This document shows, piece by piece, positions 3,770-48,220 of a stretch of 64,000 bases of DNA. This DNA is from Paragordius varius. Lineage: Eukaryota > Animalia > Nematomorpha. A model generated the notes under the pieces. The model saw only the letters and a list, made by a program, of their open reading frames with translations, did no database searches and was not told the DNA's origin. The position numbers and the translations under genes are program-made. The stretch's first letter is position 1. Every line of letters begins with the position of its first letter. The DNA is taken from the NCBI GenBank assembly GCA_964247055.1, contig OZ176050.1, positions 8,308,001 to 8,372,000 of the forward strand, in the 5' to 3' direction.

Positions 3770-6700
3770 TCAGAAGGATGTTAAACTTTCTTCCACTATA
3801 TGCGCATGTTTATAGGATACAAGATTATATTCACCCGGAGACTCCTTTATAATTACGTTTGTGTTTTGAAATATGGGATAATTATTGTATTTAATATCAC
3901 ATTTTGGTGGCGTATGGCCATTTTCATTACTAGTCATAATAATATCAACATAGTTTTTATCATCTTGGACGGTAGGGTAATCACATGCATTTTTGTTTTT
4001 TATAACATTGGCATCTGTAAGAATATTCGCTTCAATTTTATTTGAAACGGTTTGTGTTAGAGTTTCATCACACACTCGTTTTTGTTCAGCCTCTAACAAA
4101 TTCTCTTCTTCAGACGTGTAACTGCTAGTTGTTGGGCATATCGATTTTTTAACATTACCATCACGTTTAAGTATTCCGACACCGCTATCTTTGTGGTTAC
4201 TGATGTTGGCAGTTTTTGTGTTATCTATGCATATGATGACATTTATATTTATATCGTACTTTTATATTATTGATGGTATCATAATAGTTTTTAACTAGTA
4301 CATCGTTATTCAAGTGATGTAAAAGCATTTCTCCCAATCAATTATCTTTCTACTTTTAGTATCATGAACTGCATATAAGATTATTAAAACAAAGTAAGAT
4401 GTAGATTTTGAGGTTTGTATATGCTATTTTTATGGTTATATTTACATTATTTACAATTAATTATTTCCATTTGGGAGAAATTCAAAATGTTTGGAAAGGT
4501 AGGAGGGTAAGGAAAACGATGCCGATCATAGATAAGGTGGGAACATAATAAAAGAGCAAACTAAGACAACATTAAAAGATTTGAATAAAGCGGTAAAAAA
4601 CAGGTAGAAATAGAAGATAACAGTGCACAATATATCCATAAAAGTCGATTTTGACATAAATAATTAACCAATCATTTTGAAATAATTGAGCCATAAATTC
4701 AAAAAAAACCCAAATAAGAACTGGCCAAAAAACGATTCAACCGAATACATGTTTTTTTGGAAATAACCCAAAACTAGGAAAATTTTGAGCCGAAACGGTT
4801 CCGGTTTCAATTCCTTAAACTAGCGTATCTAATATTTCTAAATTTAAACAATAAATATATTAACATGTATTAAAAATAACTTACGTAATTCTTGGTTATT
4901 TAAGAGTGACATGGTAGTTGTGCCCAATATAGTGGCAGCGCATGCTGAAGTGAATAGTTCTGTGCATAATGAACAACAATGATCGTGATAACATGCAATA
5001 TATAACTCAAATTTATTTAAATGTGCAAAATAAATTCATTTTTTTGCATAAAATTTGGCAGCGAAACTCAGTTTTTAGCAAGGTTTGTAAAACCGAAAAC
5101 TTTACTTTGCGGGTTTGGGTTTACACATGTAAAAAATCTTTTAACGTTGTACCTTGATTATATGTTGAAGTACTATTTGTCCCTCCAGTTTTCCCGTATC
5201 CACCAGTGCCCATTGTCAACTTTCGGACATTTTTTTCAGGATGAAAAACTATTATATAAATTTTTGGACCAAACAGGCAAAATAGGGTGACTGAGGCACT
5301 TAGGCTTATTGATATACAAAGTGTTGTAGTTTGTATCTAAGGTAAAAATAATCATAGGAAAAAATTATTTTTTTGTAAAAAATATAAAACATTATGCAAA
5401 TACTTGGTATTCATTGAGCGTACTAAAGTAGATGGGTATAAATGCTAGCCAAATAATACAGGTTGTATACATCGAAAATCCAATGAATTTGGATTCATTA
5501 AAATTTTCAGGTATTTTGCGAGTTTTTACAGCATAAACCGTACAAACTATTATAAGTACGATATTGTATGTTAAGGATACCAAAAACGATGTATCTTTGA
5601 TTCGGCATTTTAAAATGACGATATCTCGTTTATTTTCGGGTGAAAAATTTCTAGTCCCAGGTGTTTCAAGCGTAAACCAGATTCCAGTCATGATGACCTG
5701 GATTGAAATTAGAATGATGGCAATTACAAGCTGAGAGGCTGGGCTTATAAAAGCTGGTCGTTTGGCTGATCGATTAGCGCTATCGAATATTCGAGATATT
5801 CTATTTGTTTTAGTTAGTAAGCTGGAATACATAATGGCGAAACCGAACCCAATCATAAATCTTTGCAAAGCACAGACTAAGAGAGTCGGCTTAGCTAACA
5901 ATGGAAACGTGCAGAGGTAACACAGTAAAATCCCAATTAACAGCATAAAACTCAATTCTCTACCTGAAGCCTTAACTAGTGGTGTATCAATATGAATGAG
6001 GAAAACGAGTCCAACATAAAGAGTCAATAACGTTCCCGTTAATGAAACACAAATTGGTATTATGGCGTACATGCTGTCCCAATGTATGTAACGAAGTGGA
6101 AGTTCAAAACATTTATTTAATAAAGGAGGTCTTGGCCACCACCCAGTCCCACAATCCACACAAGTGGTTTCATTGAAAACATATTCCCAGGGTTGACATC
6201 GGGTACAGATCCAGCAACATACGTCTCCTTTTAAATAAATTATATACATTAACCGATAAGGGAAGTTAAGTTTCTTCTGAAAAATAATAATGATAAAACA
6301 TTTATAAAAAATTTCTTTTTAATTATATATAAATTAGCATTATTAAGTCATCCCTTTATACTTACTAATTACTCTACTCTATTTGTTGGATTAAACAATA
6401 TAAAAAAGCTACTTAATCATAGAGACCCTAAACCAAAACATTTCCAATTAAAATGTCTTAAAAAGCCGTATGATTATTAAAACAATACCTTTTTGCATAT
6501 TTTTTATTTCTCCTCTCTTACATGGTTCACTACATCGTGAAACAGGAATTCGAACAACCATTTTCGAATTTTCAGATCTCTTTACATTGTTTTTGAAAGC
6601 TCTGTTATACAAAACGGATGCATAGCACAAAAAACGTTTTTGTCTTGATTGTTGAAGTATGGTTGAGACATCAGAATCAGTGGCGTCAATTTCAATATCA

Positions 6701-9329
6701 TCCGTATCATCGTTAGAATTTTGTGTATCGATTCGTGTTAACGATTTATCCGAAACGGCTTTTAAACTATTATTATTTTTCAAGACATTCACCATTTTTT
6801 TAGTTATGAAATGCAATGGTTTCGTTATCTGATTATTTTTGTGAGTGCTAATGTCAACAATTTCATTTTTACCCTGTATAGTAATTGTGGAATTTTGGAT
6901 AAGGGTATAATCTTCTCCAGCACCGTCCATAACCAAAGAAGCTTTCCATTTTATGTCTGAAACGTTGAGGTGCAAACCTTCATGCCAGAAGCCTACGACT
7001 TTGTATTCATACATTTTTTGCACATCATTGTATTGATAATTTAAAATATTATATTTGGGTATGCCATCACCATGATTATCAAATTTGCTTATTTCTCCAA
7101 CAATGTCTATTTTATTTTAATTAAATAAATGCGATTTTAAAATAAATTATTATTGGAAGAATATGTATGACAGAGCCACGGCGAAAAAATACCACCAAAA
7201 ATGTGTTAAATAATAACGGGGTTTCACATCCCCAATGTTAGTTAAAAAACAATTATTCAACGGGTCATATTTTCCGAAATCGGTTCTGGTTTCAAAATAT
7301 TTTAAGATTATCAAATAAATAACCTTTTTCAATTATTATAGTATTCAAACATTAACCATAATAACGGATAAAATTGTTTTTCAATAAATCTTTTTAATAT
7401 AAAAACCAATCATCATCTTAATGTCTTTTTATTCTCACAAAATCACAAAATCTGTAATCAAAATTTTTTGGTAAACTTATTTTCAAATAAATTTGTTTTT
7501 TGATAGTAATTATATTAAAAGATTAGAAATATAATTGTAATAATTTTGTATTCCTTCCATAACATTCTATTAATTTTTTACAAAACTTCTCTTAGGTTAT
7601 TTCTTAGACCAAAAAATTTCGTCGTCCAATTCTTTTACAAAATTAAACTTAACTTATTTTAAAAAAATTTAACCAAATATAATATATGCATACTTGTAAA
7701 TGACATATTGAGAATGTATGTTTTAAAAAATTCGGCACCATCCATTTTTTTCATTTCTGTACATGCACCATGTTTATCAGTGCATTTATCCTGTTGAAAC
7801 CGATGGAGGGCGTTAGCCATAGCGAATACTGCATCTATGATAAATTGGGTCTTTCCCTCTTGGTTATAATTTGTATCATCAATGATTTGGCTTAAATTGC
7901 AAGCGGTTTTGTGATTTATTGCTCGTATCAAACGTGTATTGGAGTTTATTGTATGGAATTCCAAATTAAAATTGGATATATGTGTATGATGAATAAAGCT
8001 GTCGTTTTGTAGCGATCTTATTTTTCTGTTTAAAGCATTTGGTTTTAGGTTATCGAAATCCATATTTAGTTTACACCTAAAATGTTGTTCCCAAAACTCT
8101 TTTAACCATAACCATCCACTTCTCCAAGCTCTACTAGGGGAATTAAAATTGGTCGGATGAATTTGCTTAAAATAAGTATCGAATCCAGTTATCCGCTTTG
8201 ATTGTAATTCGATAGTTATTGCCCCTACTGCTGCATCTTCTCTCCCTCGAACGACTAAATCCTCACGGCCCCAACCATCTCCAGAAATGTATACAAAATC
8301 GTTTCTCAGAGTTGATCGCTTAACCGCTCGTAAGAAGTCAGCGGCATCTTCGATTTTAAGAAAAAGGATGAGAACTTTTGCATTTGGTTTTTGATTTAGG
8401 TTTTTTAGTACCATATCAAAGTCATCTGGTTTGGCATTCATTGGAATCTTTTCCGATAAGGCGATACATATATTTTTCTTTTTAGCTTCATGAGTAAAGG
8501 ACTCAATCCCAGATTCCCCATAATCACCCTGACTAGCAACAGTCGACACATATGTCCAACCCAATTTATGAGCTATATCTACCATAGCCCTTGCTTGGTA
8601 TTGATCTGGTGGAACGGTTCGTGCAAAGTAATCATATCTGGATTTATCACTTAAAACACTAGATGTTGATGCATAACTAATTTGAGGAATACGAAAGAGC
8701 CGTAATAAATTAGCCACTTGTATGGAGACACCACTATAGGAACCGCCGATAACGCCCAAAACTGGGGTCGGTAGTTTTTTATATCGAGGCATTGAACCAT
8801 CTGAACATACCAAACTGCTTGTAAAATCATCTTCTTCATCGATTGGTGTGCTACTATTTTTTACTTCAATATTTTTGTGGATTTTATTAGTTGGCTTTGG
8901 TGAAGTTTTTGGCAGGGGGTCACCTATTTTTGTGTCCATCAGATTCATTTTGACCCGAACGAATTCAAGGGATTGATTCAAGGCATAATTTTCTCGTGCA
9001 CATGTATCTAAAATGTTGACGCCCAATTTTATGCCTGGCAATATATTTGTGTCATTGTTGATTAGTTCAATGGCATAAAGCATGGCCATAAACCTTTGGA
9101 TTCCCCGTTCAACGTTTATTCGCCCGCATGGGACTTCATCGCTCCCCTTCAAATGAATGGGAAACAGGCCTCCTAATATAATGTCTCCTGAGAGCTTTAT
9201 AGATGCGTATGAATATCCACCAAATAGAATAATTGTTATAAGTAAGGATAAATGTTTAAATTGTTGGCTAGCCAAGAGTATTATTCTGAGGTGATTAGAA
9301 TGATATTTGGTTTTATAAATAAGATTCAT
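3770..9329 (-). CDS. mGluR: Metabotropic glutamate receptor (class C GPCR, group II/DmGluRA-like); exons 9329-7694, 7106-6489, 6227-5404, 5336-5153, 4959-4885, 4224-3770
   Basis: Signal-like N-terminus and Venus flytrap domain ([48 protein letters not shown]). Cys-rich domain (CSEPC...CCWICTRC) and 7TM ([29 protein letters not shown]; TM7 [25 protein letters not shown]). All five introns are GT-AG and phase-compatible (587, 261, 67, 193, 660 nt). The last two exons are joined on splice-phase evidence only. Protein ends ...ESLTSF*. Confidence 0.93.
4490..4655 (+). mobile_element. RTE-type LINE 3' fragment in mGluR last intron (antisense)
   Basis: Decayed FGKVGG*GKRCRS*IRWEHN...KITVHNIS resembles the RTE end GKVEGKR.RGR...RW.D.I.....WR..VH. 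Confidence 0.5.
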
Positions 9330-11702: not shown

Positions 11703-13299
11703 TTAAACATGTGCCAAAAACATGTCTCCCATAATAAAATTTAACAACAAGCCATCGATCAACTAGTTTGTAAAAAGATGAAACGGTAAAAATAGTTTTG
11801 CATTGTTAATTTAAGAAATTATATAATTAATATTTGGTAATCACCAAATGTTAAGATTAATGACATATATCTAAAATATCAAAATTGGATTGTGATTATT
11901 TCTTTGCATTAATTTATCCAAAAAAGCAAACTCTTTGATTTTGTTATTTTAGAAATTGTATTGTGAACAAGAGATTTTATACTCCTTGAAACTTAGCTCT
12001 TATGAGGCTGAATGGATGGATCTTAACTAATCCCACTTTATAGCATTTGTGTGTTTTCTTTTATAATATTAATAAAAAATTAAAAAACCAAGGGTTCATT
12101 TTGTTTCCTACTCTTTTTTCAAATATTTTGTTTTTTGGCTAACCCTCTAAATTTATTCTAAAATATAAGATTATGCATCACATTTCTGAACTATTAGACG
12201 TAAAAAAAGTGGTGAGATTAACCACTTTTTGTTTTAAAAATAACTCTAATTCAAATATGAAACAGAAAAAAATTTCTTATAAAGAGTTGTGAAGATAATC
12301 CATACATAAAGATTTTTAGTAAAATCAATAAATTTGATTAAGTAGCATGTATCATTCCTTATATAGAGAAAAAAACTGCCTGTCATCTTTTCTTTCTTTT
12401 TTTTTATTAAATTATCCCAAATTCATGTAGAAAAAATGCAAAATTTATGTAAATTAATATTTTTGCATATAATTTTTAATATACTTTTGGTATTCATTTT
12501 TGGTAATGTTTGTAGATTAGCCATGTCCTCTTTTTTGCATCCTTATATAATTTCATAAAAGCACACTAAATAAAATAGATTTTCCTAGTCATGTACTCAA
12601 AATAGATTTGAACTTAAAGAAACTTTGATGTTACCTATTTTAAAAATCACATCCCTACGAAATAAATATTTTTAAACTAATTCTGTCATGAATAAATCAT
12701 AACTCTGTGCTAAACTGGCCATAAACTCTATTTTATAATTACATATTTATAGCATTATAAACTTTACATTAAAAAAACGACGCCTTCATCCCTTATAGAA
12801 TCTCATATATCTATATGAATTTCTATAAATTAAATAAAATTTAATGAAATCTTTCAGAGCTATATTTTGGTTGATTTGCCTCTGTAGATGTTAAAAATTA
12901 TTGAGCAAAACAGTTTTTGTTGTGCATATTAAATTTATAATCTCTTTTGTGAAATATATTGATACACATGGGCATTTTTATATTTTAAGATTATTTAAAA
13001 TTTATATATAATGATATTAGAAAATGCTAAGCTTGAATATGATTGACTAGTGCAGGGGTGGCCAATTTTTCCACGGGCTACTTTTTTGGGAGAAAATTTT
13101 ACGCGGGCACGTATGATTATTATTATTAAGTAATAAAACAATAATTTATCACTTCAACACAAATGATGCAAGTCTTTATATCTCTATTTACGGATTGGGG
13201 TAACTAGCACAGGCCATTAAATATTACAACAATTATTTAAGTAGATATTTTTATATAATCCTAATTTTATTAATATACATAAATAATGTTGATTCAGAG

Positions 13300-14120
13300 A
13301 ACCTCTGGTTGCCACAATCCGTACAAATATTAAATCATTTACATTATTTTTTAAATTTACAATGGATAATTAACTGTACATCTTGCGACTTATTTTAGAT
13401 GATTGAAGTATAAAATGAATTTGTAGCTCTTAACAAATATCTTTTACCAGATTTTTTGGATTACGGCATATCAGGTTTTAAATAAAGGACAAATGCCTCA
13501 AGATAGTATATTCCATTAAATCGAAAAGAGTGTCTCGCCGCAGTTTGGAGTTTAGTTAAAAAATATCATGCAAGATCATGCCAATAAAAACCCACAATTG
13601 GGCAATTCCAAAGTAATCGGTGGACTCCATAATTTGAAGCCAAATAATACATAAGATTAATATTTTCATGAAAAATTTCGGTAAGAGTCGGATTAAGATC
13701 ATCACCTCTCCGCATCTTTATATTGATTCCATAATAATCTTTTTGACTTCATAATGTTCAAACAGCCCAGATTAATAAAAGCGTCTTTCCGAATTTCTTC
13801 CTGGAAAGATTTGTTGTTTTTTATTAGGATTTCTGATATTCGATAATTTGCAATTATGGATTTTTTTGATTTTCCTGTATTACACAATGCAGTGTAGTTG
13901 CTCTTTCAATAGCTTGATTTTTAATTTGCGAATATTTGAGTTGTATTTTTGATAGTTCATATGAAGCGCAGAAAAATGTCTTTCAACATTTGCTTTTTTA
14001 AGGCAAAGCCACGGTGGAGTTGCATGAATACACATTTATCATTATGCATTTTTAAAACATAATCTTCTTCCCATTCATTTCTACAACAATATTTAGCATC
14101 TTTCTGACTTGAATTTTTAA
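13300..14120 (-). pseudogene. Frameshifted, internally deleted hAT (Buster/SPIN-type) transposase
   Basis: Minus-strand pieces: RNEWEEDYVLKMHNDKC...KKANVERHFSALH (BED-like zinc finger), KKSIIANYRISEILIKNNKSFQE (cf. A..ASY.VS..IAK..KPF), and ESTDYFGIAQLWVFI (cf. DESTD..D.AQL.IF). Confidence 0.7.
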
Positions 14121-14123
14121 TCA

Positions 14124-17100
14124 TCTATATATTTATAAAAATGGAAAATGCTGGCTTTGTGATCTGGTACAGGAAAACCGGTAGACCCAATCAAATCCAA
14201 ATATCGAAAAAATATAATCATTAATAAATGTCCCGACAATAGCTTCGCCCTTTTTTTGAAATAGGCCCCCAGTTCGGGCCCACCCCGTATGAAAAACGGG
14301 TTTTTTTAAAAAACAGAAGTCCATAAAATGGTGTTTTTGAGACAATTTTCCGGAGAACGTGTTGGACCATTCAATTTCAAATATGATTTTTGTTTACTTA
14401 TTTTCGATTGCGCCGAACATAGCCGAGCCACTTTTTTGATTTAGGCCCTCTTTTTACCCGCTCCCCCCGTAAATTGCCACCTTTTTCAAAAAACAAAGTC
14501 CACAAAAATAATTTTTTAAATCGATTTTTCGCCCTAGGTATGAGACCGTAAAAATTCTATATGGATTCCACGTATTCCCTGTTAAAAGGCAAAAATTTTA
14601 GTCTACCGTTTATTTGATGATAGCTGCTGGGTAAGGAGCTACCCGCTAAAAACTGATTTTTCATATAACTTTGTGATCTGTTTCCGGAAAACCGGTGAAC
14701 CCAATCAAATCCAAACATCGAAAAAATTTAATCATTAATGAATGCCCCGACAATAGCTTCGCCCTTTTTTGGAATTAGGTCCCCAGTTTGGGCCCACCCC
14801 GTGTGAAAAATGGGTTAAGTCAATTTTTTGGAGAACGTGTTGGACCATTCAATTTCAAATATGATTTTTGTTTACTTATTTTCGATTGCGCCGAACATAG
14901 TCGAGTCACTTTTTTGATTTAGGCCCTCTTTTTACCCGCTCCCCCCGTAAAATGCCATTTTTTTCAAAAAAAAACAAAGTCCACAAAAATATTTTTTTGA
15001 TTGTATTTTTTTGCCCATGGTATGAGACTGTAAAAATTCGAGAAAGATTTTTCGTATTGCCTGTTAAAAGGCAAAAATTTTAGTCAATCGTTTCTTTGAT
15101 GATAGCTGCTGAGTAAGGAGTATCTATCATATGTATAGCATGTTAAAAGATATATGGATATTAATACATTATTTATCCTCATCTATATATTTATAAAAAT
15201 GGAAAATGCTGGCTTTGTGATCTGGTACAGGAAAACCGGTAGACCCAATCAAATCCAAATATCGAAAAAATATAATCATTAATAAATGTCCCGACAATAG
15301 CTTCGCCCTTTTTTTGAAATAGGCCCCCAGTTCGGGCCCACCCCGTATGAAAAACGGGTTTTTTTAAAAAACAGAAGTCCATAAAATGGTGTTTTTGAGA
15401 CAATTTTCCGGAGAACGTGTTGGACCATTCAATTTCAAATATGATTTTTGTTTACTTATTTTCGATTGCGCCGAACATAGCCGAGCCACTTTTTTGATTT
15501 AGGCCCTCTTTTTACCCGCTCCCCCCGTAAATTGCCACCTTTTTCAAAAAACAAAGTCCACAAAAATAATTTTTTAAATCGATTTTTCGCCCTAGGTATG
15601 AGACCGTAAAAATTCTATATGGATTCCACGTATTCCCTGTTAAAAGGCAAAAATTTTAGTCTACCGTTTATTTGATGATAGCTGCTGGGTAAGGAGCTAC
15701 CCGCTAAAAACTGATTTTTCATATAACTTTGTGATCTGTTTCCGGAAAACCGGTGAACCCAATCAAATCCAAACATCGAAAAAATTTAATCATTAATGAA
15801 TGCCCCGACAATAGCTTCGCCCTTTTTTGGAATTAGGTCCCCAGTTTGGGCCCACCCCGTGTGAAAAATGGGTTAAGTCAATTTTTTGGAGAACGTGTTG
15901 GACCATTCAATTTCAAATATGATTTTTGTTTACTTATTTTCGATTGCGCCGAACATAGTCGAGTCACTTTTTTGATTTAGGCCCTCTTTTTACCCGCTCC
16001 CCCCGTAAAATGCCATTTTTTTCAAAAAAAAACAAAGTCCACAAAAATATTTTTTTGATTGTATTTTTTTGCCCATGGTATGAGACTGTAAAAATTCGAG
16101 AAAGATTTTTCGTATTGCCTGTTAAAAGGCAAAAATTTTAGTCAATCGTTTCTTTGATGATAGCTGCTGAGTAAGGAGTATCTATCATATGTATAGCATG
16201 TTAAAAGATATATGGATATTAATACATTATTTATCCTCATCTATATATTTATAAAAATGGAAAATGCTGGCTTTGTGATCTGGTACAGGAAAACCGGTAG
16301 ACCCAATCAAATCCAAATATCGAAAAAATATAATCATTAATAAATGTCCCGACAATAGCTTCGCCCTTTTTTTGAAATAGGCCCCCAGTTCGGGCCCACC
16401 CCGTATGAAAAACGGGTTTTTTTAAAAAACAGAAGTCCATAAAATGGTGTTTTTGAGACAATTTTCCGGAGAACGTGTTGGACCATTCAATTTCAAATAT
16501 GATTTTTGTTTACTTATTTTCGATTGCGCCGAACATAGCCGAGCCACTTTTTTGATTTAGGCCCTCTTTTTACCCGCTCCCCCCGTAAATTGCCACCTTT
16601 TTCAAAAAACAAAGTCCACAAAAATAATTTTTTAAATCGATTTTTCGCCCTAGGTATGAGACCGTAAAAATTCTATATGGATTCCACGTATTCCCTGTTA
16701 AAAGGCAAAAATTTTAGTCTACCGTTTATTTGATGATAGCTGCTGGGTAAGGAGCTACCCGCTAAAAACTGATTTTTCATATAACTTTGTGATCTGTTTC
16801 CGGAAAACCGGTGAACCCAATCAAATCCAAACATCGAAAAAATTTAATCATTAATGAATGCCCCGACAATAGCTTCGCCCTTTTTTGGAATTAGGTCCCC
16901 AGTTTGGGCCCACCCCGTGTGAAAAATGGGTTAAGTCAATTTTTTGGAGAACGTGTTGGACCATTCAATTTCAAATATGATTTTTGTTTACTTATTTTCG
17001 ATTGCGCCGAACATAGTCGAGTCACTTTTTTGATTTAGGCCCTCTTTTTACCCGCTCCCCCCGTAAAATGCCATTTTTTTCAAAAAAAAACAAAGTCCAC

Positions 17101-20100
17101 AAAAATATTTTTTTGATTGTATTTTTTTGCCCATGGTATGAGACTGTAAAAATTCGAGAAAGATTTTTCGTATTGCCTGTTAAAAGGCAAAAATTTTAGT
17201 CAATCGTTTCTTTGATGATAGCTGCTGAGTAAGGAGTATCTATCATATGTATAGCATGTTAAAAGATATATGGATATTAATACATTATTTATCCTCATCT
17301 ATATATTTATAAAAATGGAAAATGCTGGCTTTGTGATCTGGTACAGGAAAACCGGTAGACCCAATCAAATCCAAATATCGAAAAAATATAATCATTAATA
17401 AATGTCCCGACAATAGCTTCGCCCTTTTTTTGAAATAGGCCCCCAGTTCGGGCCCACCCCGTATGAAAAACGGGTTTTTTTAAAAAACAGAAGTCCATAA
17501 AATGGTGTTTTTGAGACAATTTTCCGGAGAACGTGTTGGACCATTCAATTTCAAATATGATTTTTGTTTACTTATTTTCGATTGCGCCGAACATAGCCGA
17601 GCCACTTTTTTGATTTAGGCCCTCTTTTTACCCGCTCCCCCCGTAAATTGCCACCTTTTTCAAAAAACAAAGTCCACAAAAATAATTTTTTAAATCGATT
17701 TTTCGCCCTAGGTATGAGACCGTAAAAATTCTATATGGATTCCACGTATTCCCTGTTAAAAGGCAAAAATTTTAGTCTACCGTTTATTTGATGATAGCTG
17801 CTGGGTAAGGAGCTACCCGCTAAAAACTGATTTTTCATATAACTTTGTGATCTGTTTCCGGAAAACCGGTGAACCCAATCAAATCCAAACATCGAAAAAA
17901 TTTAATCATTAATGAATGCCCCGACAATAGCTTCGCCCTTTTTTGGAATTAGGTCCCCAGTTTGGGCCCACCCCGTGTGAAAAATGGGTTAAGTCAATTT
18001 TTTGGAGAACGTGTTGGACCATTCAATTTCAAATATGATTTTTGTTTACTTATTTTCGATTGCGCCGAACATAGTCGAGTCACTTTTTTGATTTAGGCCC
18101 TCTTTTTACCCGCTCCCCCCGTAAAATGCCATTTTTTTCAAAAAAAAACAAAGTCCACAAAAATATTTTTTTGATTGTATTTTTTTGCCCATGGTATGAG
18201 ACTGTAAAAATTCGAGAAAGATTTTTCGTATTGCCTGTTAAAAGGCAAAAATTTTAGTCAATCGTTTCTTTGATGATAGCTGCTGAGTAAGGAGTATCTA
18301 TCATATGTATAGCATGTTAAAAGATATATGGATATTAATACATTATTTATCCTCATCTATATATTTATAAAAATGGAAAATGCTGGCTTTGTGATCTGGT
18401 ACAGGAAAACCGGTAGACCCAATCAAATCCAAATATCGAAAAAATATAATCATTAATAAATGTCCCGACAATAGCTTCGCCCTTTTTTTGAAATAGGCCC
18501 CCAGTTCGGGCCCACCCCGTATGAAAAACGGGTTTTTTTAAAAAACAGAAGTCCATAAAATGGTGTTTTTGAGACAATTTTCCGGAGAACGTGTTGGACC
18601 ATTCAATTTCAAATATGATTTTTGTTTACTTATTTTCGATTGCGCCGAACATAGCCGAGCCACTTTTTTGATTTAGGCCCTCTTTTTACCCGCTCCCCCC
18701 GTAAATTGCCACCTTTTTCAAAAAACAAAGTCCACAAAAATAATTTTTTAAATCGATTTTTCGCCCTAGGTATGAGACCGTAAAAATTCTATATGGATTC
18801 CACGTATTCCCTGTTAAAAGGCAAAAATTTTAGTCTACCGTTTATTTGATGATAGCTGCTGGGTAAGGAGCTACCCGCTAAAAACTGATTTTTCATATAA
18901 CTTTGTGATCTGTTTCCGGAAAACCGGTGAACCCAATCAAATCCAAACATCGAAAAAATTTAATCATTAATGAATGCCCCGACAATAGCTTCGCCCTTTT
19001 TTGGAATTAGGTCCCCAGTTTGGGCCCACCCCGTGTGAAAAATGGGTTAAGTCAATTTTTTGGAGAACGTGTTGGACCATTCAATTTCAAATATGATTTT
19101 TGTTTACTTATTTTCGATTGCGCCGAACATAGTCGAGTCACTTTTTTGATTTAGGCCCTCTTTTTACCCGCTCCCCCCGTAAAATGCCATTTTTTTCAAA
19201 AAAAAACAAAGTCCACAAAAATATTTTTTTGATTGTATTTTTTTGCCCATGGTATGAGACTGTAAAAATTCGAGAAAGATTTTTCGTATTGCCTGTTAAA
19301 AGGCAAAAATTTTAGTCAATCGTTTCTTTGATGATAGCTGCTGAGTAAGGAGTATCTATCATATGTATAGCATGTTAAAAGATATATGGATATTAATACA
19401 TTATTTATCCTCATCTATATATTTATAAAAATGGAAAATGCTGGCTTTGTGATCTGGTACAGGAAAACCGGTAGACCCAATCAAATCCAAATATCGAAAA
19501 AATATAATCATTAATAAATGTCCCGACAATAGCTTCGCCCTTTTTTTGAAATAGGCCCCCAGTTCGGGCCCACCCCGTATGAAAAACGCGTTTTTTTAAA
19601 AAAACAGAAGTCCATAAAATGGTGTTTTTGAGACAATTTTCCGGAGAACGTGTTGGACCATTCAATTTCAAATATGATTTTTGTTTACTTATTTTCGATT
19701 GCGCCGAACATAGCCGAGCCACTTTTTTGATTTAGGCCCTCTTTTTACCCGCTCCCCCCGTAAATTGCCACCTTTTTCAAAAAACAAAGTCCACAAAAAT
19801 AATTTTTTAAATCGATTTTTCGCCCTAGGTATGAGACCGTAAAAATTCTATATGGATTCCACGTATTCCCTGTTAAAAGGCAAAAATTTTAGTCTACCGT
19901 TTATTTGATGATAGCTGCTGGGTAAGGAGCTACCCGCTAAAAACTGATTTTTCATATAACTTTGTGATCTGTTTCCGGAAAACCGGTGAACCCAATCAAA
20001 TCCAAACATCGAAAAAATTTAATCATTAATGAATGCCCCGACAATAGCTTCGCCCTTTTTTGGAATTAGGTCCCCAGTTTGGGCCCACCCCGTGTGAAAA

Positions 20101-20472
20101 ATGGGTTAAGTCAATTTTTTGGAGAACGTGTTGGACCATTCAATTTCAAATATGATTTTTGTTTACTTATTTTCGATTGCGCCGAACATAGTCGAGTCAC
20201 TTTTTTGATTTAGGCCCTCTTTTTACCCGCTCCCCCCGTAAAATGCCATTTTTTTCAAAAAAAAACAAAGTCCACAAAAATATTTTTTTGATTGTATTTT
20301 TTTGCCCATGGTATGAGACTGTAAAAATTCGAGAAAGATTTTTCGTATTGCCTGTTAAAAGGCAAAAATTTTAGTCAAGCGTTTCTTTGATGATAGCTGC
20401 TGAGTAAGGAGTATCTATCATATGTATAGCATGTTAAAAGATATATGGATATTAAAACATTATTTATGGTAA
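14124..20472 (+). repeat. Tandem array of six 1058-bp units, each an A/B dimer of ~515 and ~543 bp subunits
   Basis: Unit starts at 14124, 15182, 16240, 17298, 18356 and 19414. No differences seen by eye among copies 1-5; copy 6 has a few variants. Both subunits begin ctttgtgatctg...ggaaaaccggt (14154, 14669). Confidence 0.97.
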
Positions 20473-20623
20473 TCTATATATTTATAAAAATGGAAAATGC
20501 TGGCTTTGTGATCTACAGGAAAAACGGTAGACCCATTCAAATCCAAACTTCGAACCCCCCCCCCCCCCCCCAGAAGTCCGAAGGACTTCCTCGGGCTGCG
20601 AAGCAGCACGAGATTCACGCTAG
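20473..20623 (+). mobile_element. 151-bp mini-Helitron terminating the array
   Basis: Own A|TC left end (TCTATATATTTATAAAAATGG), C17 tract (20555-20571), two GAA-loop hairpins (20573-20589, 20595-20607) and CTAG end. Confidence 0.65.
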
Positions 20624-23600
20624 TAATATAATATAATATAAATTTTACGATACCTACTTCTGTTATTTTACTAAATTAAAACTCTTTTCTAAGGAAATCA
20701 CAAATGATATAAAGTTCAATTAAAAAACATATGATTAAATAAATATATTGATAAAATAATAAATTGACTTAGTTAAATATAAAATTTTTAACAAGTAAAT
20801 TTCTCTAACACAATATAAAAATAAATTTAAAAAAAAATTTATAATTTTGTGGAAAAAATTATTGCAAAAATATTTTTTACATTTTTTTAAAAAATTCGGG
20901 CGGTAACGCAGTCGACCGCGGTCTACCGTTTAGCCACTCCTGCTCTAGTGTTATTAAGAATTTTTGTGATTTACAATCTCAGGCTATAAAAATTAAATTA
21001 AGTAGCCAGAGGGGTTAATTATTGAAAAATTTCACTTTTTTGGCCAATGTTTTGATTAACTGGTAAATTTGTTGATTATTATATAAATACTTTTGTGATT
21101 AAATTCTAAAAGACATCCATGAATATTATATAAGCAGCGTTCGGTTTTTAAACGAACATATATAATCGATCTCACCGCCTAATGAAGCTGTCATTCATGG
21201 TTACAAACAGTCTGATAAAACGCAAATGCAAATATTTTATTAAAATAAATCTAACAAAATGATGTTTGCCGATCTTATATTCCTATAATACCAATTATAT
21301 TTTACATAATACAAAAAAGCTTAGATTTTTATAATATATTGATCATATTGTCTTCGTCGGACTCAGAATTTTAACTTCAAACTTATTATCATGACAAGCT
21401 TTGAGTCCAATGTTATATGGGCATCATATATATAAGAAAATAAATTAATAAATAAATTATAATATGGTCTGGTTGATAATAGTTATTATTCTTGGGTACA
21501 AACACATCTTATTATACAAAAACATTAGCATAAACCTAACCCTAAATAAAAGTACTAATCCATCAAAATTTATTAATATGCTGCAGAATATTGTATATGG
21601 TAGTATACAATTTAAATAAATATTTAAAGCAATATAATTTATTCAAACGAAACGTAACAAAAAACATAAATTTTTTATCAGAGTCTCTAATCAATATTTT
21701 TTCCATGGTCATTCACAGTATACGATGGACCCATTTAGCTTAAAAAAATCGTAAAATTATTAAAAAAATATTTTTGGCGGCGTCGGCAGAAAATTTAAAA
21801 ATAATGCATGATGGATTAATTTTTTTAAAAAAAAAGATAAAAGAACACTAATGAATAGTTACTCATTTGAAAGAATTAATTTTAGCATAAATATAAGCGG
21901 TTCTTTTAACTGATGGATTATAAAGTTAAAATTTTGCAAAATAAGTTAAAATGATGGTGCAATACACTAATTTACAGTCAAATCTGTTTATGTGATGAAT
22001 ACAGTTCCGCATTAGAATTCACTAAAATGTCAATATTATAATTATAGAAATTTCGTATATAATCATTTGTCGGCAAAAAAACAAACTAAAAAATAATTTT
22101 TTTTATGTATAAAATATAAATCGGAGAAATATCTTGGGGAAACGTATAATATATTTTTATAGTAATTGTTGTTATAAAGAGGTTTCCAACACAAATGGCT
22201 ATATGTGCCACATTTTTAACCCAAGAATTTCGGCGTGACTTAAAATATTTGCCATGCACACACATCAATAGATTTTTTACAATATTGTGCATCCAATATG
22301 ATGTAGCTTTGGTCAGAAAGCCTAACATAAATTTAGTAAAAAATCTTATTTTCAATGTATGAGATTTATACTGTGCTTCTCTCAAAAGCCAAAGAAAGCG
22401 ATTTTTAAATAATTAAACACTTATACGTTTTTAAAAGAAACATCAGTATGGAGTGTTTTGACATTGCATCATTTTTATTTAAATCCGAATATTTTTTTAA
22501 AAAAAATGAAAAATTAATTTTTCAATTAAAATATATTTAAGCGTTTATAATTTCATAAAAACAATTAATATATATATATATATATATAATTCTAAAAATC
22601 AATGGTGTTTACAATGTAATTGGTTTATTCTATGAAAAGAAACAAATTTTTAAATATATATTTTTAGTTGAAAATGCACAATAGTGGTCAATTTAAATAT
22701 CTTCTTGAAGTAAATATTTTAGCATTTATACTTTTGGGTAGTTTTCCACCGGGAGAAATTTGAAATATTATTAGGTCAAAAATGCACTATATGGTCATTT
22801 ACTTGGTTAATTTAAAAATATCTTTCGATGAACACACTGGTATATATAACCATATTATGATTAAATATAATATGTTATCACAGCAAATTTTTGAATTATT
22901 GATTATAGAATCAGCTGTTTTCTATTAGGCATAATATGCCCAGACTGTGCAAGTAAAAAACTGATAAATTTAAAAAAATGTTCAAAATACAAATCTATTT
23001 AATAAACTATATTTAAGCCACACTACCTTTTATTATTATGTTCTATAAATATAAGCCTCCCTGGTAAAAGAAAACCCTAAGATGTATTCACCCTTTTACT
23101 CACTAAAAGTAATAAATTTATATAAAAATTATAACCTAAGAAATCATGGAAATCAGTTTTATACGAATTATGATAAAATATGGGCCGTAGAAAAAGTCGC
23201 CGAGAGCCGCATGTTGGACCTGTTATAGAGTTTCCAAAATATACTTTATCAAAATATACTAAAATTTATAATAGTAATGGGGATGCAAATTGATACTATA
23301 TTATTATATTATTTTTATCTAGATCTTTAAAAAAATTAAATATTTAAATATAACCTATTTAGACAAAAAAATGCTAAAATCAGTTATTAACATGGACATA
23401 AAATGGTCTTGGACAAAAAAGTCACAAAAACTAGGGAAACTTCAGTTCTAAAAACAGTTCCATAAAATTTGAGCTGTTTTTCTTAATATTTTAACATCAA
23501 TATATATAAGTCATCACCCTTTAATATATAAAAGAAAAAAGTGACTATCCATATTTCAAATATATTTACGATAGGCGCAAAGAGTAAAAATAAATTATGT

Positions 23601-37173: not shown

Positions 37174-39051
37174 ACCCTTTTTGACACTTATGATCGAAAA
37201 ATGAATGCGCGAAAAAAAACACCAGAAATGCTTTTTGATAAGAGAAGCCGAATAAAGAGTTGTATAATAGAGATACATTAAAAATGTCAAAAGGGTATTT
37301 TGTAAAGATGAAGCGTAAAATTAAGATGCAAGAGTGAACTTGAGTATATGGTATAAGTGAATAAATTTAAAATTATTAGCATTTACAATTCAAATTCACC
37401 CTTAAACAATTCAAATTCACCCTAAAAATAAATTGTGTTAACGCTAATATAACTCATTATTATGAAATATTATCTTTATAGCTTATTTTATTGTTTGTAT
37501 TATTTATATATTTTAAAAAATATAAAAATAAGCTAATATTTAATTTTAAAAAATACGTAATCTATTTTAGAGTGAATTTGTTGTTCGAGGGTGAATTTGA
37601 ACTGTAAATAGTATATATAACACAATTGGTTGTTAATAAAATATCAAAGTTCACAAATATTTTTTGGACAACATTTATAAAAACAAATTTATATTATAAT
37701 TTATACAATTATATGTTATAGAAAATATTTAAGATAATTTACAAAATTAAATTATAATTAAATTTTTTAATAAATTGACTAAAATATTTTAAAAATAAAA
37801 TTAAAAGCCCTAAAAATATGCCATAAAGGCCAATTATTTAATTAGTTTAGCATTGCAAATTATATGAGGTTAAAGAAGTTGAAAATTATATTATATGAAA
37901 AAAGGGATATAGTTTTAAAATAATAGAAATAAAACTAAACCAAAAACAATATGTTTTATTGTCTAATTACAAAAAAATATTTTATATTTTTATTGAATTG
38001 ATCAATATATTAATGGGTTCAAAATACATAACGAGCATATGATTAATAAACTTTAGGCTAAATTATTCATAATAAAAATTAATAATATCAAATTATATAT
38101 TAAACTTTTGGCATAGGATAGTTATTTATAATATTGTGGTCTATCATCTCCGAGTTTGCTTCAGGCACCGTATTTTCAACTAAATCTTTCTTTTTTTGTT
38201 TGGAAATTTCGTTAACAAAATTATTATCTGGAACCGTTTCGGAGATAGATCTTAAAAAACAAAATTTAAAACACATATGCCTAATAATTGTTCCATCGTA
38301 CCTTAAACATATCATAATTTTATAATTTGGCATAAAAACTTAAAAAAATAAATATAAAAATTTTTACATTAAAAATGTATTTAAGATGTGAAAATTATGG
38401 ATAAAACAGCTTGTAAGCCTGAGAACCATTATTGTATAATAAACTGTACAAAATTTAAAATTTATAGTACTTTAAGAATAATATCTTACTTACAAATTTT
38501 TAAAATTTATGGATATTTCTTTGGCCTTGCCAAAACGTGAACCATGTTTTTGATCATAATTTTTTGCTTCCATTTCTTGCATGGTAGCCCTTTCTATGGG
38601 ATTAAGCCAATGTGCATTTTCGGAACTAAAGTAATCAGACTGATCATCAATGACAACAGTTCGTTTAGCACTGATATAAAAAAATTAAAATACGTAGTTT
38701 TATCATAATTTAACAGTCGTTTTTTGTTTGCAATCGCTTGCCCCTCATCGCTCATCAGCTTTATTAACAATTTATCGCTGGCTTTGGATGCGCGATTCAA
38801 TATTTCTTGTTCTTCATTCGTACAAACATAATAATTATATAAAGTGTATACTAAATTTCCGCAAAAAAAACATGGACCAGAACCCTCTTGAGCACAGATA
38901 ATACGCCCACACTTTAAGCAATTGTTGATTAACTTATGTTTGTAAGCCTGACACTCGCATTCATGTCTTCCAGGTAATAAAAAATATTTATCCTTTTGAA
39001 CATCTATAATTTTTCTCACCATGTGAAAAAAAGATCTTACGATTTTGACAT
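34478..39051 (-). CDS. TRIP4: Activating signal cointegrator 1 (ASC-1): zf-C2HC5 plus ASCH domain; about 10 exons, 5' start tentative
   Basis: LPGRHECECQAYKHKLINNCLKCGRIICAQEGSGPCFFCGNLV, KRTVVIDDQSDYF, RRIQD, CLSMHQPYASLLIYGIK|EEGRSWPTAHRGRLWIAST, FPDVYPTSCILGCI, KIPIQGKPKI|YDLDAHTWRAAMKNL*. Introns 38693-38671 (23 nt), 38493-38251, 38105-36701, 36539-35871, 35748-35572, 35476-35447 (30 nt), 35349-34531; odd 24-nt insert at 38851-38828; tentative first intron 39040-39015. Confidence 0.9.
36862..37609. mobile_element. MITE with ~45-bp TIRs (37381-37609) plus a second left arm at 36862, in a TRIP4 intron
   Basis: atttacaattcaaa(c/t)tcacccttaaacaattcaaattc occurs directly at 36862 and 37381, and inverted at ~37565-37609. 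Confidence 0.65.
37088..37170. repeat. (AT)n microsatellite, ~83 bp
   Basis: Pure AT dinucleotide run; shorter runs also near 2833, 22568, 24586, 55529 and 61235. Confidence 0.98.
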
Positions 39052-40958
39052 GCTGATTCAAGACATATTTGAAATTGCACAAAAATAGTCAGAATGGCCA
39101 AATAGTTTACCATTCCATTGCTTTTTATATGATATATAAGCATAGGGGATTATTTATTCTAGAGGGAACTTGGAGAATAAGCATAATTAGAGTTAAAGTG
39201 GCCCATAAACTACCAGAGAAAAATATGTAAACTTTGATTAGGTTTTGATAAACTTATTATGTTAAATTACTCTATATATTTGCAATCGCTCCATGCAAAA
39301 TTCATAAAATCATTAGGTTCAAATATATCATAAAATATATATAATCTGATGGAAAATATACTTATAAATTTTCATGTGGATTCTGTCTTTGGGTCATACG
39401 TTTCAAAATTTTTGATAATTTTTTTTAACGAACACAAAATTAGCGTCCATTAGCTAGATTAATTTTTATTTATGTATGCTTACATTCCAAAAAAATATTA
39501 GTTTATATTATAAATTTGTAGTTTTTTACTCTAAATGGGCCAGTTTTTTTAAAATACACGAACAATCAGGCCTAATAAGAATCATAAAAATATGGTAGAG
39601 CAATGGTACTAATTGAAAAAAATGGGCCAAAACCAACTATCTATCTTGTTTCCCGGGCCGTGCCCCATCTAAAACAGTCGGCTCAAACCGCGTCCCTAAA
39701 AATGCATTTTCATGACCGTAAGTTACCTAATAAAATTTTTAATGCATATATTTGGATTATAAATGTCTACGAATTCATCAACAACTACCCAATATTTTAT
39801 TTTATAATATGGTAAACTGCCCTTGTAAAATCTTATATTTTTATATGAACAGGGAAAAAATAACAGCTGATACTAAAATTAACTAAATCAAATCAGGTAA
39901 AAATTAATATGAGATCTTTTCAAAGATAATTATTTATTTGAACATACATTTATTGCCTGTATTATTACCGATTTCAAAAAGTTTAAAAAAAATGACAAAG
40001 AAGTTGAGATCAATATTTTTTACAATTTTATAGATCTTATGTAAAAGTTTTTAAATAAGGCTAAACAAAGCATGATTTTGAAATAGGCCTAATAAATTAC
40101 TTTTTAAGATATTAAAATTTCAAGTATCTTCAATACCTATTTTCTATCTCAAATCTTTGATTCAAATTAGGAAACTAGGGATCCCTGAATATATCTAAGA
40201 CTTCCATACCTTTCCATTTTTTGTCGTATAGCTTTGTAGGTTGTTATATATTTCAGGGCTCAATTTTGTAATAAACAATTTTGAAAGTTATTAATAGTTA
40301 AAATTATGGCTCATGTTGTTTACAGTTTTGTGACTTCTAAAGGCTAAAACTGTGATAGCTTCAATGCATGGTTGAAGCGAACGATTGATATTAAAATAAA
40401 AATTATCAAGATTTTTCTGGTAAAATATAGTTAAAAAGCTTCTCAAGGTTAATTATTACGATTTCTAACCAATGCATTTATTTGCCTGTTGCAATAGCGA
40501 TTTAAATTTTAAGCAAATGGAGGCTGAGACGAGTTTTAGAATTTTACATTTTTTAAAAAAAAATATTTTTGTATAATGCCCCTAAAGACAAAAGAAAGCA
40601 TTTTTTTAAATTTGGCTTATTTTAAATACTTTCTAAAATATAAAAATTTCAAATCCCCTATGATATAAAACTACCCCAAAAGGTAATGGGTTAAATTATT
40701 TTTAAAGCAAACTACTGATGGAATCAGTTCCATTTTAAATTTATGCTTCTATATAAATATTATCTAAAGAAGCGCCAAAATATCTAAAATAATTTAGTTT
40801 TAAAAAAGTTCATATCAAACTGCTTCGACGCCATTTTTATTTTCCAACATTTTTGCAAAATTTCGTGTTTATTTGCTTCTAGCGCTTAAATTAAAGTTAA
40901 TTTTTTAAATACATTTAACATTAAAAAAACTGTTTATTCTTCATCACTTATATATTAA

Positions 40959-45717: not shown

Positions 45718-48220
45718 ATGGCTTTAGACACGTCAACGGCCCGGTTATCTCGCATAGAAAAATATGTTTCATCGCTCTGGGCCGAAGGAAATGCCAAATT
45801 TCCTGATATCAAAGTTAAGGTTGGTGATAATACGTTTCCAGCTCATAGAATAATACTCATATGTCACAGGTAAAAAATGTTCTATACATATTTACAGGCA
45901 AATATGAAAATATTCTTGGTTTTTTTTCATAATCTTAACTTAAAAAATAATACTAAAATTTTTTTATCTAAACATATTTAATTTATATTAGTGACTATTT
46001 TTGTGACAAAATCCTGAACGAGCCATCCATTACAGAAATAACGATCCCATCCGAATTTAACATAACAGCTGATGCATTTAAAAGTACCTTGGAATTCATG
46101 TACAAATCGGAGCTGAATTTAACTCCACAAAATTTAGATGCACTGATGAATGTTTCGAAAAAATTAGGGATGTTTCACATTACTAGATTGTGTGAAACAT
46201 TAGCGGTTCCACCTCCAGAAAAACCAGCTGAGAAGGTTTTAACTCCTAAAGATCAGCCTGGTATTTTTTATAAATAGCTATGTTTTTAACGAAAACCATT
46301 TTAATAGTTAAAACTCTGCAATACAGCTTATTTTATTAAAACGTTACTTAATATAAGCTTAAATGTCGTTAATGTCCAGATAACGCATTTACTGTTATTT
46401 CATTTTGTATTATTATAATGTAACATGCAAAAAATGTGGCTATTAAAAAGGTAATAATCGAAGTGGATATTCATACATTACCAATTATTTTAAGGTTATA
46501 ACAACGTTGTAAAATTGAAATAGTTTTTTATAAAAATGGCTATATATAAGAATAGGAAAACCTAAATTAATTTTGTATAAGATAATAAATTTAAAAAATT
46601 ATAAAAATATCAAAGATAAACAAAGTAATAAGATTATTATTCAACAATTTAAGTTAAAAATTAAATTTTCTTGTAAAAAAATGCTTGTTTATAACAAATA
46701 TTTATCATTCAATGCTCTAAGTTTGAAAAAAAATTGTTCATTTACTTTTACTAAATAATTAGATATTAAAATGCAACAAGTGCCTTGGGGAGATATTTAC
46801 AGTGCAAGCGATATGAATTGGCAACCGACTATGAGAACATCTGCCGTGGGTCATTACATGAAATATTTGTGGTATAAACGGTTAGATGATACAGCAGATT
46901 TTGTATTAACTATGGGACCATATAATTACAAAGTCCATAAATTCGTACTTAGTTGTCACAGTTCGTATTATGCCGACCTGTTTCGGAAACAACCCTTCTT
47001 AAATGCCTCAAGTTTACCCAATTTTTTGGTCACGGATGACAGCACTTTCCAGGAGTTTCTTAAAATTTTGTATACTCAAGACATTCCTACTACGATTGAT
47101 GGGCGAACGTTTAATACGATCCGTAATTTGGCACAAGCTTTACAAATGTCACACATTGCAAACGCCTTAAATCAAAAATATGGCGGTGAGATGCTTAACA
47201 CACAATGTATGATGGGAACGGGTGGAATAAACGCTGCACAACAAAATGCAGTACCATTTCAGCAATCAAATATGTTTCCTCTCATAAACAATAATAACAA
47301 TGTACCAAATTATAACATAATTGGCAATAATAACGCCGCCGGTGCCGCCCCATTTTCCCAACCTACCATGAATATGATAAGCCCAGGAGGTTTTAAAACA
47401 TATAACGGTGGACAACAAAATATGGCATACCAACAGCCAACCAACGCAATGAACGGAGATGAAAATGCATTTCTTCAACTGTTATCGTCAGACACGGTCC
47501 CGTACGCCAGTGAATGGGAGTTGGCCCAAAGCGCCATATCTTGGCTAAGGAACCAACAGAACCCCGAAACGTTAGTCTGGAAAGTTCTCTCGTGTATCCG
47601 TTATAATTTGCTTACAAAAGGCGAAATACAAAATCTTGTGAGGATAACTAAAGATTGGTTTACCAAAATAGCAGAATATAGGGATCTAATCTACACCGCT
47701 GATTGGTAATATTAACATATACACAATTTAGCTTTGTGTCAAAATACATACGATCCCTATCTTAATAAATTTGATACAATACTTATATTGTATATTTCTA
47801 CTTTTATACAAATAAAGTGTTAAAGTCATATCACAAACTATATAAGTAACGAATTTTTTAATTATGATTAGATAAAATTTTAATTTACTCTGTATAAGAT
47901 TCAATGAATATACTATATAACGATTTCAGATTGTTAGATAAAACTATTTATAAAAACCATTGGATATTTTACATTATGGATATTCACTATACCTTTTTAT
48001 TCTCTACTAAGTATTAAATTTGACTGAATTAAAATAAAAAATCGTAAAACAATTTATTTGTAAATTCATGATAAATTATATTTGAATATAATGATAAATG
48101 GTATATTATTTTGTTTATAGGTTGTTATCCTGTCAAAGATTTAACCTTGAACCATTGTTTGTAGGGAATCCAAGATCGCGATTTTATTCAAAACAAGCGC
48201 AACCATATATAGCATATTAA
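45718..48220 (+). CDS. Protein with two tandem BTB/POZ domains, a Q/N/G-rich linker and a partial BACK domain; exons 45718-45869, 45992-46260, 46763-47705, 48121-48220
   Basis: BTB1: DIKVKVGDNTFPAHRIILICHS|DYF...LEFMY. BTB2: DFVLTMGPYNYKVHKFVLSCHSSYY...LKILY. BACK-like: FLQLLSSD...SEWELAQSAISWL...VLSCIRY, ending ...GNPRSR. Three GT-AG phase-compatible introns (122, 502, 415 nt). Confidence 0.85.

Follow-up and report, generated by a model that had tools for sequence, protein, structure and literature searches.

A Helitron layout in which several 5' ends share one 3' end has been described in plants and fungi. Xiong, Dooner and Du (2016, Plant J 88:1038, as relayed in PMC12628747) reported tandem arrays of truncated Helitrons with this layout in 27 plant genomes and ascribed the arrays to rolling-circle amplification. 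FoHeli elements of Fusarium oxysporum have several 5' termini and one 3' terminus, for which a composite origin via self-insertion, with transposition from the leftmost 5' end, was proposed (Chellapan et al. 2016, PMC5148889). The same paper refers to bat, Drosophila, rice and maize as further hosts of tandem Helitron insertions. Helitron/Helentron elements with internal satellite-like arrays include DINE-TR1 of Drosophila and Cg170/HINE of the Pacific oyster (PMC7492417, PMC8268682), and Heli2Xen of Xenopus also bears an internal array (PMC12001565). Herein, we analyzed a stretch of 64 kb from contig OZ176050.1 of the nematomorph Paragordius varius (the window), in which a Helitron of six tandem units interrupts a relic of a hAT-like transposon. 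This multi-unit Helitron probably expanded and was homogenized at its present site, through unequal exchange or gene conversion.

Several features set this locus apart from the described systems. According to PMC12628747, the plant arrays resemble the window array in having a 5' end on each unit, with only the last followed by the hairpin/CTRR end, and in having few to many repeats. The plant arrays are described as partly decayed and mostly centromeric, whereas the arrays here are young (96-100% identical) and dispersed on all large contigs. Unlike the plant arrays, those of P. varius occupy A^T sites, are mobile as whole elements and reside in an animal host. The duplicated 5' piece of FoHeli is shorter than 200 bp and is usually repeated once, whereas the 1058-bp unit here can be present in 14 copies or more. 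DINE-TR1, Cg170/HINE and Heli2Xen are, like the window element, non-autonomous, with a variable-length tandem middle able to seed longer satellites. However, their repeat is internal and lacks the element's own 5' terminus, which is included here, and several of them belong to Helentron/Helitron2, whose ends and target sites differ. Elements with many starts and one end are already known from plants and fungi and are common in the P. varius genome, so the single locus adds little.

The Helitron spans 14124-20623 on the plus strand and consists of six tandem units and an end module, with seven left ends and one right end, between A(14123) and T(20624). It measures 6.5 kb, of which the units make up 6.3 kb. 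The first 5' end (TC..., 14124-14144, +) corresponds to the 21-nt motif TCTATATATTTATAAAAATGG, which had seven exact matches in the window, all on the plus strand, with none expected and none in shuffles. These matches start at 14124, 15182, 16240, 17298, 18356, 19414 and 20473; each is preceded by A and opens with the TC 5' terminus. Tandem Repeats Finder, with a longest period of 500, missed the array. A separate repeat search found six copies at 1058-bp spacing and an internal half-period of ~478-482 bp; the exact spacings are 1058 bp (five times) and 1059 bp (once). The preliminary description had reported six 1058-bp units, each opening with a Helitron left end after A, and the motif matches bear this out.

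Unit 1 (14124-15181, +, 1058 bp) served as the reference for units 2-5, located at 15182-16239, 16240-17297, 17298-18355 and 18356-19413 (+), and all four are 100% identical to it. Unit 6, the edge unit (19414-20472, +, 1059 bp), is 99.4% identical to units 1-5; it has two private changes, lacks 965T and carries a distinct "last unit" spacer. Each unit is composed of the 5' end (unit positions 1-31), sub-repeat A (32-515), a 30-bp linker, sub-repeat B (546-997) and a 61-bp spacer. By self-BLAST of the unit, sub-repeats A (14155-14638, +) and B (14669-15120, +) of unit 1 share 83% identity, and no 5' end motif stands in front of B. The spacer, ending in ...TATCCTCA (15121-15181, +), immediately precedes the next 5' end. 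The CTRR ending is absent from all units, which instead end in ...TATCCTC followed by A. Since a Pfam search of the open reading frames (ORFs) inside the units and an Rfam search of the unit and the left arm of the hAT-like host returned no match, the units are taken as non-coding and outside known RNA families.

The 3' terminus of the element lies in the 151-bp end module (20473-20623, +), which joins the 5' end and an 82-bp variant of the unit head to a C tract, two hairpins and CTAG. The tract of 17 C (20555-20571, +) differs in length among family copies. It is followed by two adjacent GAA-loop hairpins of a Helitron 3' end (20573-20589 and 20590-20612, +), identified by DNA folding. The hairpin pair folds at -15.3 kcal/mol (z -4.64), and 0 of 200 shuffles were as stable. 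The hairpins end 11 nt before the Helitron terminus, and these final 11 nt close with CTAG (20620-20623, +; CTRR), next to the host T at 20624. This 3' end signal occurs once in the window, in agreement with the earlier claim that no unit ends in CTRR and that hairpins plus CTAG|T are confined to the last 151 bp. Unlike in Helentron/Helitron2, no terminal inverted repeats (TIRs) were apparent by eye, as TCTATATATTT... at the 5' end and CTAGCGTGAAT..., the reverse-complemented 3' end, have no complementarity. The window element is a canonical Helitron (Helitron1), non-autonomous, by all structural criteria tested. Because the six units (6.3 kb) are exactly bounded by Helitron 5' and 3' ends, this is an array within a mobile element and not a free, classical satellite DNA. 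The second 3' hairpin loop carries an A variant (GCGAAGC, not GCGTAGC) that occurs genome-wide only in the window (20594-20623) and in one other element, L070 (C2:6625930). Both elements are multi-unit, yet their units are not grouped together in the tree.

The Helitron block interrupts a host element at 13053-20942 that measures 1.39 kb without it. The left TIR, CAGGGGTGGCCAA (13053-13065, +), is complementary at 11 of 13 positions to the right TIR at 20930-20942. The flanking 8-bp target-site duplications, GACTAGTG (13045-13052) and CTCTAGTG (20943-20950), agree at 6 of 8 positions. The left part of the host (13053-14123, +) has short degenerate minus-strand ORFs at 13702-14124, and the right part covers 20624-20942 (+). 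The genome contains ~50 paralogous pieces of this host with 70-78% identity. Two of them, L068 (C5:2668695-2670036) and L069 (C4), align without interruption across the insertion point and contain no Helitron; with paralogs ~75% identical, the base-exact position of the empty site is approximate. Host-type TIRs are also present in both, with 8-bp duplications matching at 8/8 positions in L069 (GTATACAT) and 7/8 in L068. These empty sites uphold the nesting, with TIRs at 13053 and 20942, that the preliminary description had proposed.

The host is hAT-like, a short non-autonomous relic classed only by its ends and duplication, on account of the TIRs and the 8-bp length. The hAT transposase remnant of the preliminary description was not confirmed. 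A Pfam search of the three short minus-strand ORFs gave no match, and a language model gave a lead to ZBED5/GTF2IRD2-type hAT zinc fingers with a score of 0.80, below the trust level. No transposase-bearing long ORF was found in 26 paralogous host loci. The host is also much older than its guest, with ~25% divergence between paralogs versus 2-4% in the Helitron family.

To place the window element in its family, we searched the 110.6-Mb assembly (44 contigs) for both ends. The 5' end (≤1 mismatch) had 2179 copies and the 30-nt 3' end (≤2 mismatches) had 450, with 0 matches for either reversed motif used as control. One-unit BLAST located arrays on all large contigs. The family sample consisted of 27 elements, the window element and 26 at unrelated loci, read out of several hundred. 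All 27 were preceded by a host A and followed by a host T; their flanks were unrelated and showed no target duplication. The CTAG end was found in 27/27, and the first left end began with TC in 26/27, the first end of L029 being mutated. The Helitron identity proposed earlier (5' TC, 3' hairpins plus CTAG, A/T insertion without duplication) thus holds here and at 26 other loci, and copies sharing these termini at AT sites, whose absence would have spoken against the proposal, are plentiful.

Sampled elements carry 1-14 units, and repeated 5' ends with one closing 3' end also occur in the 26 other elements. Single-unit composites, for which the preliminary description had suggested a search, are among them. 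Arrays of variable unit number, from 1 to 14 or more, characterize the family at dozens of loci, the hAT host being incidental, and the picture of one exceptional satellite arising within another transposon is not supported. An unbiased stretch of contig C1 (1.8-7.35 Mb) contained 72 clusters of exact 5' ends, of which 17 had at least two ends, so the 5' end also belongs to many single-headed elements. The 151-bp module had been considered a complete mini-Helitron. Within contigs C1-C5, however, the family spacer directly precedes 61 of 65 end modules (at least one of the four exceptions, L056, merely has a variant spacer), and a free population of 151-bp mini-Helitrons was rejected on this count; such a module is rare or absent as a free-standing element.

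The family also varies in its internal structure. The 65-bp C-tract/hairpin tail joins the unit mostly after position 85, and elsewhere at ~356, 373, 537 and 860 (compared in L009, L029, L055, L064, L066 and L067), so several tail-junction variants exist in the family. At L014/L013 (C6:2889805-2893936), a three-unit copy has entered a unit of a second copy in the opposite orientation; the flanks match unit positions ~272 and 277 on the minus strand, so members of the family insert into one another. In L066 (C1:6418151-6418202), two 5' ends are arranged head to head, one on each strand, with 10 bp between them. The array L6263 (L062 plus L063, C1:7348137-7363579), has 14 units in two interleaved variant groups, one unit being 1570 bp long with three sub-repeats.

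Comparison of units between loci provided markers of position. The last-unit spacer (...aaaac..ggtaA) differs from the internal-unit spacer (...aatac..cctcA), and this distinction is common to nine independent loci, six of which also have a 3-bp-deleted end-module head. The number of internal units before the last unit at these loci was 0, 1, 1, 1, 2, 3, 4, at least 4 and 5, the last being the window. Since these position markers are shared, there was a master element that already contained two or more types of unit, and elements of several units transpose as a whole. The multi-unit architecture thus appears to be older than the insertion in the window.

Comparison of units within loci provided markers of locus. 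In the tree, units cluster by array, and identity within the window array is 99.8%. Four variants (201T, 207G, 351T and 895T by unit position) were present in all six window units, including the "ggta" unit, and in 0 of 26 other arrays. The 965T variant was found only in window units 1-5, and two changes are confined to unit 6. A 30-mer with 201T and 207G had exactly six matches in the 110.6-Mb assembly, all of them in the window array. Private fixed variants, 2-6 per array, likewise occur in most other multi-unit arrays. Because Helitrons transpose by copy and paste, a donor carrying the private variants should persist; the 30-mer search of the assembly found no donor with those of the window array.

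These private variants bear on the idea that a donor of at least six units was copied in ready-made, with no later change at the locus. Transposition of multi-unit elements as such is indicated by the position markers common to loci, and L070, the sole other carrier of the hairpin-loop variant, has at least five units. However, the private variants of the window array occur nowhere else in the assembly, and the units of L070 are not grouped with those of the window. The best outside unit in the sample was only 98.1-98.3% identical to window units, and one-unit BLAST found no outside match above 98%. We consider a ready-made array improbable.

The evidence is better explained by growth at the locus, in a sequence of steps that is probable as a whole. 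A copy with at least two units ("cctc" internal type and "ggta" last type) and the end module would have transposed into an A^T site. The target would have been the old, degenerate 1.39-kb hAT-like element, which would play no part. After insertion, the array would have grown, and mutations would have arisen and spread across the units at the locus, through homology-driven exchange or conversion involving misaligned units. The 3' edge of the last unit would have been left untouched, as unequal exchange predicts, and a final, very recent burst would have produced the five identical units. The array anatomy, the Helitron hallmarks, the variable copy number across the family, the position markers across loci and the array-private variants are direct observations. 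Copying by recombination, not by the Helitron enzyme, is what we infer from them.

Unit variants at other loci fit the same process. Exchange in the register of sub-repeats A and B, which have no 5' end at their borders, accounts for units with A alone (576 bp), with B alone (516-540 bp) and with three sub-repeats (1570 bp). L058 is a two-unit higher-order repeat (1057/1052 x3), and the end-module heads combine unit-type with end-type sequence in mosaic form.

Rolling-circle replication offers a different origin, the one to which the plant arrays are attributed in PMC12628747, whereas the sequence evidence here favors in-place recombination. In this model, Rep/helicase that initiated again and again at the repeated 5' ends, or that copied a circle lacking the terminator, would have generated a concatemer of units bearing 5' ends, either in the course of transposition or through abortive nicking at the locus. 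Every unit begins exactly at a 5' end, and many 5' ends with one 3' end are the pattern that this model addresses (PMC12628747). Units are also near identical within arrays, and the genome retains Helitron Rep-like coding remnants (16 matches to PF14214, Helitron_like_N). Rep-like loci include C8:2817195-2824424, C1:10593054-10595656 and C6:4227766-4228304. Most of these matches contain stop codons, however, and none of those on C1, C2 and C4 lies near the family's 3' end (≤1 mismatch), the nearest being ~68 kb off. The age markers of unit 6 and units 1-5 also differ: four private variants are shared, then one or two are separate, then five copies are identical. This layering argues for stepwise growth and not for one burst. 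No donor is seen either, the private variants being absent elsewhere in the assembly. In addition, the distinct last-unit spacer is kept at nine loci, which a concatemer from a one-unit circle would not reproduce, and copy number also changes in the A/B register, where no 5' end is present. Taken together, a rolling-circle origin is unlikely. The preliminary description had invoked either rolling-circle read-through or unequal exchange between the repeated left ends. Growth by amplification agrees with our results and unequal exchange is its better supported form, whereas read-through is unneeded and fits less well.

An artefact of assembly, in which one or two real units were expanded by the assembler, was also weighed. 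Units 1-5 are 100% identical over 5.3 kb, a situation in which assemblers are prone to error. However, arrays of 2-14 units with small differences between units occur at many loci of this 44-contig assembly. In the window, unit 6 and both junctions are unique, and 6.5 kb is well inside long-read length. We regard such an artefact as very improbable, more so than either of the biological alternatives above.

Four points weigh against expansion in place by recombination. Unequal exchange and enzyme-driven local re-replication cannot be told apart from sequence alone, because both yield a whole-unit register. The donor could be lost, unassembled or polymorphic, and amplification could have taken place before transposition. 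The five 100% identical units could mask an error in assembled copy number. Our reading of the family is further limited to 27 of several hundred elements.

A bolder possibility, which we hold to be doubtful, is that the repeated 5' ends are working start sites. Transposition from them would give nested progeny with the same 3'-most unit, and internal nicking would drive local re-replication. The occurrence of loci with 0, 1, 2, 3, 4 and 5 internal units before the same last-unit type fits this possibility without proving it, as does the pair L009 and L029. L029 (C9:1284955-1289012) has two units differing by 2.3%, with a mutated first 5' end (TATATAAATTT...). L009 (C8:4392387-4396444) has one unit, which is closest to the second unit of L029 (99.4% identity), and the two loci share an unusually long end module (unit positions 1-537 plus tail). 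Transposition from an internal 5' end may thus have occurred in this pair. If the 5' ends did work in this way, the element would carry its own machinery for making and spreading satellites, and the arrays would be a selected multi-origin design instead of a by-product of recombination.

Under in-place expansion by recombination, the locus has a modest value as a clean, young animal example whose steps can be ordered from sequence. The order would be a multi-unit landing at A^T, the spread of variants, an edge unit keeping the old spacer and a last burst of five identical copies. The dozens of sister arrays form a natural series for comparing growth by recombination with growth by transposase. 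The locus also illustrates how transposon-carried arrays can seed longer satellites.

Outside the transposon nest, the window contains coding sequence of several kinds. Three long ORFs on the minus strand (5395-9329) encode a class C G protein-coupled receptor (GPCR; metabotropic-glutamate-like receptor) with ligand-binding (PF01094), nine-cysteine and 7TM_3 domains. Relative to this minus-strand gene, the Helitron/hAT nest is on the upstream side, ~4 kb past the 5'-most of the GPCR ORFs. A zf-C2HC5 (TRIP4-type) exon is located at 38597-39082 (-), and an ORF with BTB/BACK domains is located at 46771-47706 (+).

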